Position numbers and translations under genes: made by a program. From sequence record PQ451753.1: a DNA stretch of 64,000 nucleotides, one strand, 5' to 3'. Below are positions 7,557-61,931 of the stretch, piece after piece. The notes under the pieces are model-generated. The model made no database searches. It saw nothing but the letters and a program-made list of their open reading frames with translations, and was not told where the DNA came from. Numbering within the stretch: position 1 is the stretch's first letter; the number at the start of each line of letters is the position of its first letter.

Positions 7557-9083
7557 TTACATGTCATCAAAGCCAAACAGATCGTCTGTTTCGCCTGCTA
7601 AGGCACCTGCGTTAACGGACTTAAGACTTAGGTCAACATCTAAATCATAGTCCCACGGAAGGATGCCTGTGTCGTTAAATGGCAATACACGGTAACGGTG
7701 TGCCATTGGTGTATCTACTAGAGTACGGTGTTTGCCACGTTGAACTTCCAAGAATGATTTCTCACCCATTTCAGTAATACCAAAGTAAAGCTCGCCATCT
7801 GCTTCATTATCCACTGTTGTACAACCATCGTAGAATCCTTTGCCCGGTAGGTTACGTACATACTTAGCAGGGTCAATAGCTTTAAGCTCTTTTGCTTTAG
7901 GTGATAACTGGTGTGGTGCAAGTACCGCACACTTACGTGGAGAAGTGATGTTACGAACAATACGGTAAAGCTCACGAATGTCAGAACCAGTTGCACCCGT
8001 ACCTAAGCCATTACGGTTAATTGTGCCAAGGTAGTCAGGTCGCAGAACAACAACATGGTAGCCTAACGATTCGTAGTAAGCAAAACGTTCACGTAACATA
8101 GCAGGAGTAAAGTCTGAGTTGATGTGTCGTTCAAACTTATATGTCCAACCACGTTCAGCAAGTTTCTGACAAACATATTTAGTTGCTGTCTTAGGATCGA
8201 TATCTTTAACGTTAGCAGGTTTCTTTTCGAAGTGGTCATGGATAGCTTTATATGCAATCGGCATGTTTACTTCTAGTTCGTTCTCAAACGACAAGTCAAG
8301 CATCAGAGGCTTCTTACCCTCAGGTACAAACATGTCAGGATCGTTGAACAAACCAAGACTTAAGAATGTCATTAATGAGAACAACGTTTTAGCATTGTGT
8401 GGAAGTGCAGGCATAAGCCATAGTTCACCCGGAACAATACCATCGTTCACACCCATCATGCGGTTGATACCTTTCCAACCAGTCTTAAGCGTAGCACCCG
8501 CTAATTGCTTCTTGGTGTTCTCAAAGATGTTCTCCATTTCATCTGGAGTGTCAGTACCAACAGATGCAACTAGTGTGGAACTTTTACCGTCAAGAGAGTT
8601 ACGTGTAACTCGCGCTAACTCGTCTGATAATTTGGCAGCAATGTCTTTAAGGTTTGCATCGCCATCGTGGTTGATACTATAGGAGGCTGTAGATATGAGC
8701 TTTCTTAGCTCTGAGCCGTTAATATAATGTTGCAAATGTGAGATGTTCGAAGAGATAGCATTCTTGATTTCATTATCATTTTCATACTTAACGTCGAACG
8801 CCTCTTTGACACTTTCGTAGAAATGTGTGTCTAGTGAGCAATACACGCGTATCTTTTGTAAGACAGTGTGATGGTCAAATTCTAGGTCGCCATTTGCCAA
8901 ATCAATAACAAGAGTCTTAACTCCAGTTATCGCAGCGTGGCCGTCCCCATCTGAAACGAAGTCAGGTGTGCGGATGTGTGTTGCTGTTTTCTTGATTAGG
9001 TTAGCGTAACTACCTTGCTCTCCAAGTTTCTTTTCAAGGAGTAACAAAGTAAGGCAGTTAACTAGTGCGATTTTCTCTTCCAT
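7557..9083 (-). CDS. dnaB: Replicative DnaB-like helicase (phiKZ gp118-like)
   Basis: KTGWKGIN, Walker A variant ALPHNAKT, SFEN catalytic Glu, Walker B DYLG, HQLS, RGKHR arginine finger; divergent from capsid operon as in phiKZ. Confidence 0.9.
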   Translation of the reverse strand: MEEKIALVNCLTLLLLEKKLGEQGSYANLIKKTATHIRTPDFVSDGDGHAAITGVKTLVIDLANGDLEFDHHTVLQKIRVYCSLDTHFYESVKEAFDVKYENDNEIKNAISSNISHLQHYINGSELRKLISTASYSINHDGDANLKDIAAKLSDELARVTRNSLDGKSSTLVASVGTDTPDEMENIFENTKKQLAGATLKTGWKGINRMMGVNDGIVPGELWLMPALPHNAKTLFSLMTFLSLGLFNDPDMFVPEGKKPLMLDLSFENELEVNMPIAYKAIHDHFEKKPANVKDIDPKTATKYVCQKLAERGWTYKFERHINSDFTPAMLRERFAYYESLGYHVVVLRPDYLGTINRNGLGTGATGSDIRELYRIVRNITSPRKCAVLAPHQLSPKAKELKAIDPAKYVRNLPGKGFYDGCTTVDNEADGELYFGITEMGEKSFLEVQRGKHRTLVDTPMAHRYRVLPFNDTGILPWDYDLDVDLSLKSVNAGALAGETDDLFGFDDM

Positions 9084-57849: not shown

Positions 57850-57880
57850 CGGAGGGACGTTAAGTCCCTCCTTATTTTTT
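57850..57880 (+). terminator. Intrinsic terminator
   Basis: GGAGGGAC/GTCCCTCC stem plus T tract. Confidence 0.75.
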
Positions 57881-57894
57881 ATTTGGAGCAAATC

Positions 57895-59199
57895 ATGAAA
57901 CTACTTAAAGCAACATTCAATCGTCTAAACCTTACTCAGTCGCCTGTACGTCATCCGATGACTGCTGACTTTAACGCGGAAGTATTCCAATGTCTAAGTG
58001 AAATGCCGTTACGTGAACTTGTTCACGATAGTCATGGTGATATTAGCGAGCTTGTATCTCAGCTTGAGACCGATGGTGTCTTTACATACCGTTATGGTAC
58101 AATGGAGCCTGCCGCGATTCCAGGTATTGAATTGGGTGAGGTGCATACGTTCGAATTCCTCGTCGAGTTAGAGTCACGTGCGGTATATACACAACGTAAC
58201 ACGCTGATGGTAGTACGTGGTTATGTTGAAGGGTTACCTAACTCGTCTGAAGCGAAATACCACATTGTGTCAACGATGTCATACCGTAAGGATGCTAACG
58301 TTACTGACGTGTATATTGTTAACAACACTCTATTCTGCTTAGAAGAGTCGGTTGACGCGCGAACTCTGCGTACTCGTGACGGTGTGGCGACATACGAGAC
58401 TCAGCTTGATACTATTGACCTCGACGATACGGTAGTGGTTGATATGCGTGCCTCGTTCCTCGCAGGTATGCAGATGTTCGACAATATGGAAGTAAGTCGC
58501 AGTTATTACTTAGCGCGTATGGTAAATGCAATCATTCAGTGTGAAATCAATAATCCAGCCGACGACATCTTCGGGTTAGAAGCCAGACACGGTATGGTGG
58601 CTGACCAACTGAACTTCCCTAACATGTTGTTCAACCCATTCGTTAACGAACTACGTAATCTAGGCGATAAGATGCACCGCACTATGTGTCTTGATGATAC
58701 AACGTTACGTCAGTTATTCGGCGACGCAGTCGAAGCGGAATCTAAAGACCTTATTAAGATTCGTCCGGTCGCAAGTGCTTGGGATAATTCATTCGAGTCT
58801 CTGGCGGCTTACACCATCATGCAATACCTTCATGGTCATGTTGCAAGTTTAGGTGTTCAAACCTTAGAGCTGGAGATTGATGAAGATGGACCAGTTCAGC
58901 CTAAGTACACTGCCCTTAAGGATTTGGACAAAGGTGTGCACACTTATGCAGACATTACTAATGTTGCAGAAAGTATTCACGAGCAGTTCGATTGTCAGGG
59001 ACATCAAGTAACCGCATTTATCGACTTTAACGTAAATGGCGTCTCTACTGTAGAGGTGTCTGTAGATGGTGGCGAGGAACGTATCTTTGAATACGCAAGC
59101 TTTGCATCTAGTTACTGCAACCCATTGGTAACTCATGACGATAGTTTGCAAGGCGAGCTAGCTGCTATGTATAAAACAATTCGTGACGTAATCGCGTAA
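57895..59199 (+). CDS. Probable divergent copy of a Chimalliviridae core-block protein (possibly PicA/Imp1, phiKZ gp69 family)
   Basis: Motif order KLLKA.F..., IPG....F.FLVE...VRGY, YLARM, W....ESLAA, VSVDG....YASF..YCNPLVT resembles that family from memory only. Confidence 0.35.
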   Translation: MKLLKATFNRLNLTQSPVRHPMTADFNAEVFQCLSEMPLRELVHDSHGDISELVSQLETDGVFTYRYGTMEPAAIPGIELGEVHTFEFLVELESRAVYTQRNTLMVVRGYVEGLPNSSEAKYHIVSTMSYRKDANVTDVYIVNNTLFCLEESVDARTLRTRDGVATYETQLDTIDLDDTVVVDMRASFLAGMQMFDNMEVSRSYYLARMVNAIIQCEINNPADDIFGLEARHGMVADQLNFPNMLFNPFVNELRNLGDKMHRTMCLDDTTLRQLFGDAVEAESKDLIKIRPVASAWDNSFESLAAYTIMQYLHGHVASLGVQTLELEIDEDGPVQPKYTALKDLDKGVHTYADITNVAESIHEQFDCQGHQVTAFIDFNVNGVSTVEVSVDGGEERIFEYASFASSYCNPLVTHDDSLQGELAAMYKTIRDVIA

Positions 59200-59216: not shown

Positions 59217-59888
59217 ATGACAACTGTACTATTTACTAAAGACCATGTTTACTGCGATACGCAAGTTACCCGCTGCAATGACGTAGCTAGCTTAGACTGC
59301 ATCAAGTTCTTCCCACTGTCAGATGGGTCTATCGCATATGGTGCAGGTTCCCTTAGCGAGATAGTTGCCTCTGTAGCTATGTATGAAGGTGTCGATAGAA
59401 AATTACCTATCGAGCAATATATTGGTGGTGGTGGCACCACTCTTGTTATTGTTAAGCCTGACGGGTTTATTGAACGCTTTAAACCAAAACGTGAATCTAA
59501 ACGTACGAGCGACGGTATGGGTGGTTCAAAGCAACGCCACCCTATGTTGTTCTGGAAAGGATCAGATCCTTTCGTTTGTATCGGGAGTGGTAGGCCACAC
59601 GTGGATGCGCATTACACTTATGTTAACCACAACCCAAAACAAGCAATGATGAATGCCGCTAAGCGCGACACTGGAACAGGCGACCGCATGTTCAAGCTAC
59701 CACGTCGTTGGAAGGAAGGCGAATCCGTTGATATCGAGTTTTACGATGGATTTACACGTGCAGGAAAATACAGAAAACCAATCACTATCAACTTGAAATT
59801 CCCTAAAGATGCTAACTGGGTTTATGATGTACTAACTGGTCAACGTGACCTTTACCCTATCAATCTTAAAGAAATAATCGGAGCGTAA
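59217..59888 (+). CDS. Ntn-hydrolase, HslV/proteasome beta-like threonine protease
   Basis: N-terminal MTT nucleophile, D-T-Q-V-T, IGSG, A...D..TG motifs. Confidence 0.7.
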   Translation: MTTVLFTKDHVYCDTQVTRCNDVASLDCIKFFPLSDGSIAYGAGSLSEIVASVAMYEGVDRKLPIEQYIGGGGTTLVIVKPDGFIERFKPKRESKRTSDGMGGSKQRHPMLFWKGSDPFVCIGSGRPHVDAHYTYVNHNPKQAMMNAAKRDTGTGDRMFKLPRRWKEGESVDIEFYDGFTRAGKYRKPITINLKFPKDANWVYDVLTGQRDLYPINLKEIIGA

Positions 59889-59889
59889 T

Positions 59890-60729
59890 ATGTTTGACTA
59901 CCAACCAACTCAAATCAAAACGCCATGGAAGCAAATAAACGAGTTACTTAGTGGTGATGGATTTAATCCAATTGGTCTTTGGTTACTTCCTGTGATTAAC
60001 CATGAGCAGGTGTATGACTTCTATGCACATCTGATTGCATCACAAGCACACTTACTGGATGTATCAGAGCATCCTCGTCGTAACGATGACTTGAAATATA
60101 CTATCTGTTATATGGATGCGGCATCGCAATATGCAGCCGCTATGGATGCGAATGTGGCACAGTACATATCTGAGCGTACTGGTAAACCTGTGGGGGGTTT
60201 ACCCGTTGATGTCATTAACTACAATGAAGAAGTGTTTGGTGAACGTGACATTCGTTTCATTAACTGGCGATTGTCTCGCTCAAACTCGCTAGATGTTGCC
60301 ATCCGTGGTATTGGCGATGGGTTGTTAAACGGTGGGTGCGATATGCGTATCTGTATCGTCGACCGTGTTGGTTTAGAAGACTATCACACTGAGACAGTTA
60401 TTCGAATGTTACGTGAAATACGTCACTGGGCAGCTCAGAATCAAGTACTGGTATTAATGAGTGCGCCTATTGACCACCGTTACTTCCGCTATGAGACGGA
60501 ATTAGATAAACCGTTCATTGACCGCTTTGATGATAAACGTATGGATAAACTTTACCTACATAAGGGTATGTCGTTACAAGCAGACGGTGAGTTACTGATT
60601 GGTCACAATGACGAAGAGCAAGAGTTAGTAATTCGTCGTGGTAAGTCGCGCGGTGACTCTCGCCCCTATGGTGAAGAGGTACGTTTTGATTCGTTAGTAG
60701 GAGAGTTTCCTGAATGGGATGTAATGTAG
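59890..60729 (+). CDS. Degenerate paralogue of the DnaB ATPase domain (no N-domain, Walker A lost)
   Basis: KTPWKQIN, LWLLP, IVDRVG, ADGELLIG, IRRGKSR align with dnaB at 7557-9083. Confidence 0.8.
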   Translation: MFDYQPTQIKTPWKQINELLSGDGFNPIGLWLLPVINHEQVYDFYAHLIASQAHLLDVSEHPRRNDDLKYTICYMDAASQYAAAMDANVAQYISERTGKPVGGLPVDVINYNEEVFGERDIRFINWRLSRSNSLDVAIRGIGDGLLNGGCDMRICIVDRVGLEDYHTETVIRMLREIRHWAAQNQVLVLMSAPIDHRYFRYETELDKPFIDRFDDKRMDKLYLHKGMSLQADGELLIGHNDEEQELVIRRGKSRGDSRPYGEEVRFDSLVGEFPEWDVM

Positions 60730-60911
60730 ATAAGTTTGAACTGATACTTGGCATCGAGCGTAAGCCTGAAGACAGTACTATGTTGCATGTGCAAGTGGCA
60801 AAGCAACGTACAAAAGGTCCAAGGGTTAAAATCGTGAACGGTCACGCAATCGTGGTAAGAGATGAAGGAGTGTATGATGAGTCGAGAGATTCTTCTGGAA
60901 GCGGTGCATGA
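60714..60911 (+). CDS. Small protein resembling DnaB/RecA-fold C-terminal strands
   Basis: VDKFELILGIER...LHVQVAKQRTKGP resembles DAD.II.L.R...AELIIAKQRNGP. Confidence 0.4.
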   Translation: MGCNVDKFELILGIERKPEDSTMLHVQVAKQRTKGPRVKIVNGHAIVVRDEGVYDESRDSSGSGA

Positions 60912-61885: not shown

Positions 61886-61931
61886 CAACATAAGGGGTAG
61901 TTCGCTACCCCCTCTTTAATTGGGAGATAAC

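Follow-up and report, generated by a model that had tools for sequence, protein, structure and literature searches.

What use has a phage with an intact replicative helicase for a second, helicase-like protein whose adenosine triphosphate (ATP) site is gone? The question is raised by open reading frame 79 (ORF79, pVpJHP1101_079; 59890..60729, + strand) of Vibrio phage pVp-JHP1101 (PQ451753.1, 230 kb), whose host is V. parahaemolyticus. The window analyzed here is bases 1-64000 of that record, and coordinates refer to it unless another record is named. ORF79 is intact, encodes 279 amino acids (aa), has a GGAG located 6 nt 5′ of its ATG, and is annotated 'hypothetical protein'. An earlier note on this DNA had called it a paralogue of the resident DnaB helicase with a dead Walker A motif, and had proposed for it a regulatory or inhibitory role in the helicase hexamer. 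We describe ORF79 as a catalytically dead, stand-alone RecA-like core from a chimallivirus-type DnaB C-terminal domain, and hold with high confidence that it is a dead helicase-domain homologue under selection.

The sole close sequenced relative of pVp-JHP1101 is Vibrio phage pVa-21, a distant phiKZ-like jumbo phage (nucleus-forming, chimallivirus) (PMC6472347). The resident replicative helicase ('dnaB', 7557..9083, − strand, 508 aa) matches Pfam family PF20307 (divDNAB, 'divergent DnaB-like ATPase') at E 3.8e-131 and also phrog_3213, and is 96.8% identical to the pVa-21 helicase. The divDNAB helicase type defines the group 1 jumbo phages (Iyer et al. 2021, PMC7824862). In the resident protein the Walker A Lys, catalytic Glu, Walker B Asp, Gln sensor and finger stripe are all intact; the P-loop of its family is unusual and glycine-poor, reading A-L-P-H-N-A-K-T. 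The C-terminal end of the helicase (7557-7650, − strand) is an acidic tail with aromatic residues, loosely conserved across the helicase family, which recalls the partner-binding tails of T7 gp4 and of single-stranded DNA-binding (SSB) proteins.

Homology of ORF79 to the helicase core

ORF79 is genuinely, though very remotely, homologous to the RecA-like C-terminal domain of the helicase that the phage itself encodes. The pairwise alignment by which the earlier note would have checked the relationship, here a BLASTP comparison of the two proteins, gave two collinear segments, ORF79 residues 9-38 against helicase residues 199-229 (E 1e-5) and residues 230-254 against 427-453 (E 0.024). Profile comparisons agree in both directions. 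A hidden Markov model (HMM) of the seven ORF79-family members, searched against every stop-to-stop ORF of 60 aa or longer in the window (250 in all), had the helicase as its sole match (E 2e-7; runner-up 0.95). The reverse search, with an HMM of 36 helicases against 548 ORFs of related loci, picked only the ORF79 homologues. Alignment of the ORF79 family to the helicase with hhalign gave 97.5% probability and E 5e-12 over 240 columns, joining residues 7-279 of ORF79 to residues 197-479 of the helicase. A MAFFT alignment of all 43 sequences (the 36 helicases and the seven family members) is collinear throughout the RecA-like domain, and ORF79 and the divDNAB helicase are ∼20% identical.

The relationship lies beyond the standard family models. 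None of the seven members matched any Pfam model at E up to 10, PF20307 included. ORF79 had no match in NCBIfam and no meaningful match in PHROGs, and a sequence search of the PDB with the family profile returned no match.

Residues and domains lost or kept

The seven family members were compared, in helicase numbering, at the positions where the 36 helicases show no or almost no variation. Walker A, Walker B and the Q motif were identified through an alignment of the helicase family to G. stearothermophilus DnaB.

The residues that would hold and hydrolyze ATP are gone. Walker A K232 and T233, both invariant across the 36 helicases, are lost in all seven members (V/V/V/V/V/M/S and Y/Y/Y/Q/Q/A/Q, respectively). 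In ORF79 the degenerate P-loop is PVINHEQVY (residues 34-42; 59989..60015, + strand), aligned to helicase PALPHNAKT, and the loop of the family has a basic–acidic pair (H/R/K then E/D). The catalytic Glu, E267 in 36 of 36 helicases, is lost in six of seven members (S/A/S/K/K/Y/E); the remaining Glu is in P0092, which is poorly aligned there. Another member, P0001, has a 10-aa insertion exactly at the former catalytic-Glu loop. The gamma-phosphate sensor Q392, in the motif H-Q-L-S, has become Pro in six members and Ile in one. S394 and K398, in the Lys-bearing loop after the sensor, are replaced in every member; by analogy with cellular DnaB, this is a loop that would touch single-stranded DNA (ssDNA). 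E220, N273, Y351, P390 and D425 are likewise lost throughout the family.

A different set of positions has been retained. T201, W203, N207, G215 and P225, from the N-terminal hairpin and the first strand, are present in 7/7 members. In ORF79 they fall within residues 9-35 (IKTPW..IN....G....GLWLLP; 59914..59994, + strand), which comprise the N-terminal hairpin, a short helix and the first core strand and give the strongest helicase match. The Trp and Asn here are specific to divDNAB; cellular DnaB has TGF..LD. The Walker B Asp, D350, is kept in 6/7 members, with Pro in P0092. It corresponds to D158 of ORF79, in the Walker B strand MRICIVDRVG (residues 152-161; 60343..60372, + strand), where the helicase's next, invariant Tyr has disappeared. 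R374 is retained in six members and R377 in all.

Toward the C terminus, D429 and E431 of the EADGE strand are kept in 6/7. They lead into a beta-hairpin (residues 230-254, QADGELLIGH....ELVIRRGKSR; 60577..60651, + strand) that carries an R-x-K-x-R basic stripe and forms the trans-acting finger region. R449 (ORF79 R250) is retained in 6/7, with Tyr in P0091, and G450, K451 and R453 are retained in 7/7. K451 and R453 are K252 and R254 of ORF79, and these two are invariant across all 43 aligned sequences; the stripe is the best-conserved element common to the ORF79 family and the helicases. Its assignment as the arginine finger is inferred from the Q-R in K-Q-R-N-G of cellular DnaB. Further on, Y464 and D478 are each retained in 5/7 members and P476 and W477 in 6/7. 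The final residues of ORF79, GEFPEWDVM (271-279; 60700..60726, + strand), are homologous to helicase G-I-L-P-W-D, and the protein terminates here.

Whole regions are missing as well. The alignment begins at helicase residue 197-199 and ORF79 has just eight residues ahead of that point, so the ∼195-residue N-terminal domain and the linker helix, which make up the hexamer collar, are absent. So are the last ∼30 helicase residues, with the acidic tail. In six members the core has a net charge of −9 to −16; helicase cores have a median of −3, and this difference argues against DNA binding by the family.

Most of what the earlier note had read by eye holds in the family alignment. Its motif pairs KTGWKGIN/KTPWKQIN, LWLMPALPHNAKT/LWLLPVINHEQVY (the Walker A pair), DYLG/DRVG, HQL/API and EADGELYFG/QADGELLIG are all correctly matched. 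VQRGKHR and IRRGKSR are rightly paired too, although in P0091 the first Arg of the finger stripe is Tyr. For SFEN/YMDA the loss of the Glu stands and the register does not, being off by about three residues (E267 aligns with S79). The absence of the N-terminal domain is clear from the alignment; its description as 'primase-binding' was borrowed from cellular DnaB, and no chimallivirus primase has been identified. In an account of chimallivirus replication machinery the divergent helicase is listed, while the primase, clamp and clamp loader are without identification (PMC13648687). The note had overlooked the common LPWD C-terminal motif, the missing linker and the missing acidic tail.

Judged by these residues, ORF79 is a pseudo-ATPase that would no longer be able to bind or hydrolyze ATP or to thread ssDNA. 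Since it departs from the helicases in model score, Walker A, catalytic Glu, sensor and N-terminal domain, it represents a new small helicase-derived family and not a DnaB.

Predicted fold

ORF79 is predicted to have the RecA-like C-terminal core fold, of DnaB/RecA type. AlphaFold2, given a mixed alignment that included helicases, returned a model with a predicted local distance difference test (pLDDT) score of 89.6 and a predicted template modeling (pTM) score of 0.90. T4 gp41, E. coli DnaB and the G40P ATPase domain headed the PDB matches of this model, with Rad51 paralogues and KaiC behind them. Foldseek placed the DnaB-family helicases at E 1e-9 to 1e-8, with a query-normalized template modeling score (TMq) of ∼0.6. 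A second model was built from the seven family members alone. Its pTM was 0.73, the order of secondary structures was unchanged, and its matches were again in the RecA superfamily (Rad51 paralogues, KaiC, gp41 and DnaB). PDB entry 9svx, of Rad51 paralogues, was among the fold matches of the first model.

In a library of viral structures the best match was an independent model of the pVa-21 orthologue (template modeling score 0.96). Next came three jumbo-phage helicases of 511-521 aa (TMq 0.72-0.74), ahead of ordinary DnaB helicases. One of the three, from Aeromonas phage LAh10, is of the divDNAB type and is matched by the resident helicase too.

Family, selection and origin

The ORF79 family is very small, and its members come only from jumbo phages of the marine Vibrio type. 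It consists of seven distinct sequences, all intact, with identities down to 36% and 22%, and two of them come from sequenced phages. A search of 5.8 billion proteins found four relatives, and in a profile search of 1.84 billion representatives the only additions were P0091 and P0092; two long repeat proteins from the latter search were rejected as spurious. Scans of IMG/VR and JGI metagenome contigs yielded no relatives. A tblastn search of a phage collection found only pVp-JHP1101 itself and pVa-21.

ORF79 is under clear purifying selection. Ratios of nonsynonymous to synonymous substitution rates (dN/dS) were computed by the Nei-Gojobori method for pairs with unsaturated dS. They are 0.059 for ORF79 of the window against its homologue in the related locus L009, 0.107 for pVa-21 against L009, and 0.120 for L002 against L010. 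Against pVa-21, ORF79 of the window has dN 0.112 and a ratio of 0.078, with dS near saturation. For the helicase the same comparison gives dN 0.025, dS 0.54 and a ratio of 0.047. The earlier note had named a ratio near 1 as a result that would speak against its proposal; the values found are 0.06-0.12, similar to that of the helicase. ORF79 nonetheless evolves 4-6 times faster than the helicase, with protein identities between the two phages of 81% versus 96.8%.

In a maximum-likelihood tree of the shared domain the ORF79 family is monophyletic (100/100). Its stem, of ∼6 substitutions per site, joins an unresolved polytomy of chimallivirus helicases and carries long-branch warnings, and an attempt to date the duplication by phylogeny failed on that long stem and polytomy. 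The term paralogue in the earlier note is thus sound in so far as a motor-domain homologue lies in the same genome; with so long a stem and no resolved attachment, the tree does not bear out a duplication of that very gene. Descent from the chimallivirus helicase type is supported by shared derived motifs, namely the Trp/Asn pair (Phe/Asp in cellular DnaB), the RGKxR hairpin and LPWD.

Gene neighborhood

ORF79 lies within a co-directional run of unknown genes, ORF77-ORF82, ∼3 kb upstream of the prohead protease block and ∼50 kb from dnaB. Terminator-like hairpins bound the run. One (57851..57871, + strand; 8 bp, six of them GC, with a T-run) is 5′ of ORF77 and probably marks the start of the ORF77-ORF82 unit; the other (61894..61911, + strand) is 3′ of ORF82 and probably marks the end of the unit containing ORF79. 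A scan for sigma-70 promoters found fewer sites than in shuffled sequences, and such a scan is uninformative for a phage with its own RNA polymerases.

The gene directly upstream, ORF78 (59217..59888, + strand), encodes 223 aa starting Met-Thr-Thr and is like peptidases of the HslV family (N-terminal nucleophile, Ntn, hydrolases). This assignment comes from phrog_1040 ('peptidase HslV family', E 4.5e-31) alone; searches of PDB and Pfam gave no match. The stop codon of ORF78 is 1 nt ahead of the ORF79 ATG. The coupling is retained in pVa-21, in L009 and in the distant L005/L006, where ORF79 is 36% identical, making three lineages. In the L002/L003/L010 lineage, ORF79 and ORF80 are present, the ORF77 homologue is directly upstream, and there is no peptidase gene at the locus. 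Remoter ORF78 homologues (46-48% identity), which come from marine metagenome contigs, have a 136-144-aa gene and then a DnaJ-domain gene after them, and no ORF79-like gene was found around them in stretches of 7.8-12.7 kb. Since each occurs in these loci apart from the other, the peptidase is not an obligate partner of ORF79. We also considered ORF79 as an HslU-type activator of the HslV-like protein and rejected this, because the fold is RecA/DnaB-like and not AAA+ and because each gene is found without the other in related contigs.

The steadiest neighbor is ORF80 (60714..60911, + strand; 65 aa, with a conserved V-K-I-V-N-G-H motif), which in all lineages with an ORF79 homologue shares 16 nt with the 3′ end of that gene. 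The last five ORF79 codons are therefore dual-coding, and their apparent conservation is inflated. A resemblance of ORF80 to designed Kelch-repeat proteins in the PDB was rejected, the score being a sum of sub-threshold repeat matches.

Two further observations concern this neighborhood. Locus L009 (73-1612) is a recombination mosaic, in which the peptidase is 98% identical to that of pVa-21 and 78% to that of the window, and the ORF79 homologue is 90% identical to that of the window and 82% to that of pVa-21. ORF77 (57895-59199, + strand; 434 aa, phrog_3141) has a second matching place in pVa-21 by tblastn, which suggests a paralogue there.

What ORF79 may do

In rings of RecA-fold and AAA+ proteins the ATP site lies between subunits, where one contributes its P-loop face and its neighbor the finger face (DnaB, T7 gp4, RecA). 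Dead subunits with only a trans-acting finger exist, as in the delta-prime subunit of the E. coli clamp loader, and Rad51 paralogues cap filaments. The earlier note had summed up ORF79 as having lost cis catalysis and kept the trans finger, and the family bears this out, the cis residues being lost family-wide while the basic stripe is conserved best. The role that it proposed, a regulatory or inhibitory subunit of a hexamer, is a plausible fit to this pattern of loss and retention.

The most economical reading, which we put forward tentatively and by analogy with such systems, is that ORF79 may be a non-catalytic partner that docks on the free P-loop face of the phage helicase. That ORF79 acts on this helicase at all, through protein contacts, we likewise consider possible without calling it probable. 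Docking would bring its finger face (the R250-K252-R254 hairpin and the EADGEL strand) onto an ATP-site face that a DnaB subunit leaves exposed, perhaps at the seam of an open helicase spiral, and once docked ORF79 could serve as a cap, an assembly or loading aid, or a brake of the ring. As it has no N-terminal collar, linker helix or acidic C-terminal tail, ORF79 would not be a full ring subunit and would not recruit tail partners.

Several observations weigh against this. Some 50 kb separates the gene from dnaB, and it sits among unknown genes upstream of the prohead protease and not among replication genes. Its family occurs in a handful of related phages, versus ∼290 phage records with the helicase, and a spread so narrow rules it out as a factor serving chimallivirus helicases in general. 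In P0091 the first Arg of the stripe is replaced by Tyr, and any of the basic residues may be the true finger. Folding alone could explain why the termini are conserved, and the conservation at the C terminus comes partly from the dual coding with ORF80. A bolder form of the proposal would have a helicase-derived pseudo-subunit whose finger face caps or opens the DnaB ring, and in this phage lineage either fills the missing loader role of nucleus-forming phages or serves as a dominant-negative weapon against rival chimalliviruses; we think this distinctly unlikely. The literature consulted (PMC7824862) describes no loader for the divergent helicase of these phages.

Other explanations place the protein elsewhere. 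The fold may have been re-used outside replication, as a scaffold or ring whose associates would be ORF80 and, in the majority of lineages, the HslV-like peptidase to which ORF79 is translationally coupled. HslV is a six-fold ring protease that normally requires a hexameric cap. The 1-nt spacing after ORF78 (conserved in pVa-21, L009 and L005/L006), the ORF80 overlap common to all lineages and the position of the hairpin-flanked unit upstream of the prohead protease all favor this, as does the reported import of an HslVU-family accessory protein of the chimallivirus RAY into the phage nucleus (10.1101/2023.02.24.529968). We nevertheless consider it unlikely, because the peptidase gene is missing from the locus in L002/L003/L010, remoter peptidase homologues have no ORF79-like gene in the 7.8-12.7 kb around them, recombination has split the histories of ORF78 and ORF79 (L009), and the C-terminal tail was taken over from the helicase rather than gained as a new docking motif. 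A dead cis site with a live trans face is also a dominant-negative pattern, and ORF79 might be a poison subunit that invades and blocks host DnaB, or the helicase of a related jumbo phage in the same cell, for exclusion or host shut-off instead of serving the replication of its own phage. Although a protein that is patchy and accessory in distribution and changes ∼4-6 times faster than dnaB (dN 0.112 versus 0.025) would suit such a role, its dN/dS gives no arms-race sign at the whole-gene level, and the phage would need to shield its own, near-identical helicase type. The common motifs (Trp/Asn hairpin, RGKxR, LPWD) are moreover of chimallivirus type and absent from cellular DnaB, which makes the host helicase an unlikely target. 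On balance we rate a poison subunit as quite improbable.

Two simpler accounts concern the ATP site itself. It is very improbable that ORF79 is still a nucleoside triphosphatase, or a nucleotide-binding switch, with non-canonical residues. The Walker B Asp in six of seven members and a parental P-loop that was already poor in glycine leave some room for this, but the loop has neither Lys/Thr nor a conserved substitute, varies among members (VINHEQVY, INREHVQ, IDRDVMA, WDKEASQ) and has an acidic residue inside it; the catalytic Glu and Gln sensor are gone too, and the Glu loop accommodates an indel. The idea that ORF79 is a decaying, functionless remnant of a duplicated helicase gene draws on the loss of all catalytic residues and on the very narrow family. 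It is disfavored, and we give it next to no credence, in view of seven distinct sequences that are all intact down to 22-36% identity, a dN/dS of 0.06-0.12, a confidently predicted fold, a ribosome-binding site and conserved translational coupling.

Significance

The ORF79 family is a new pseudo-ATPase family derived from a known helicase, and our literature searches turned up no account of a helicase paralogue that is catalytically dead. It offers a concrete candidate for an accessory factor of the unusual replication machinery of nucleus-forming phages. If ORF79 does dock on the helicase as a non-catalytic partner, it would add a hexameric-helicase case to the few motors regulated by their own pseudo-enzyme paralogues (Rad51 paralogues, delta-prime). 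The narrow distribution, seven distinct sequences of which two are in sequenced phages, limits the weight of this.

Aeromonas phage AP1

Locus L016 is in the T4-like record of Aeromonas phage AP1 (MT713136.1, 219140-224604), where three consecutive ORFs are fragments of chimallivirus genes, for the PhiKZ major capsid protein, the divergent family B polymerase and divDNAB. One is annotated 'virion structural protein', and the three have on either side of them a piece annotated as ribonucleotide reductase beta subunit. The locus looks like a chimeric assembly or an odd recombinant.

Comparison with known systems

The nearest known system is PF20307 divDNAB itself (PMC7824862). Its RecA-like core is collinear with ORF79 over the full length of the latter, and the two share the Walker B Asp, the K-T-x-W..N hairpin, the G-x-LWL-x-P strand, the EADGE strand, the R-G-K-x-R hairpin and L/F-P-W-D. 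ORF79 differs in having no N-terminal helical domain, linker or acidic tail, in the replacement of its ATP-site residues and in being more acidic. The wider DnaB family (E. coli and G. stearothermophilus DnaB, T4 gp41, SPP1 G40P and T7 gp4) provides the best structural matches of the predicted fold, but its members, which are 10-16% identical to ORF79, translocate actively as hexamers and have complete ATP sites and DNA-binding loops.

For the logic of the proposal other systems are closer. The Rad51 paralogues (XRCC2, XRCC3, RAD51C/D) are RecA-fold paralogues of a motor, some with degenerate or dispensable ATP sites, that bind or cap the active polymer. They are eukaryotic partners of a filament and not of a ring, and the likeness is one of logic, with no specific sequence relationship to ORF79. 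In the clamp-loader delta-prime subunit (HolB) of E. coli, nucleotide binding was lost and a trans-acting arginine kept for the ATP site of a neighbor. Delta-prime, however, has the AAA+ fold and not the RecA fold, and is a permanent, stoichiometric subunit of a known complex. The activity proposed for ORF79, to hold, open or block a helicase ring via its RecA tier, would be like that of lambda P, DnaC, DciA and SPP1 G39P, loaders and inhibitors that contact the C-terminal tier of DnaB, although these are not derived from helicases and have no relation to ORF79 in sequence or fold.

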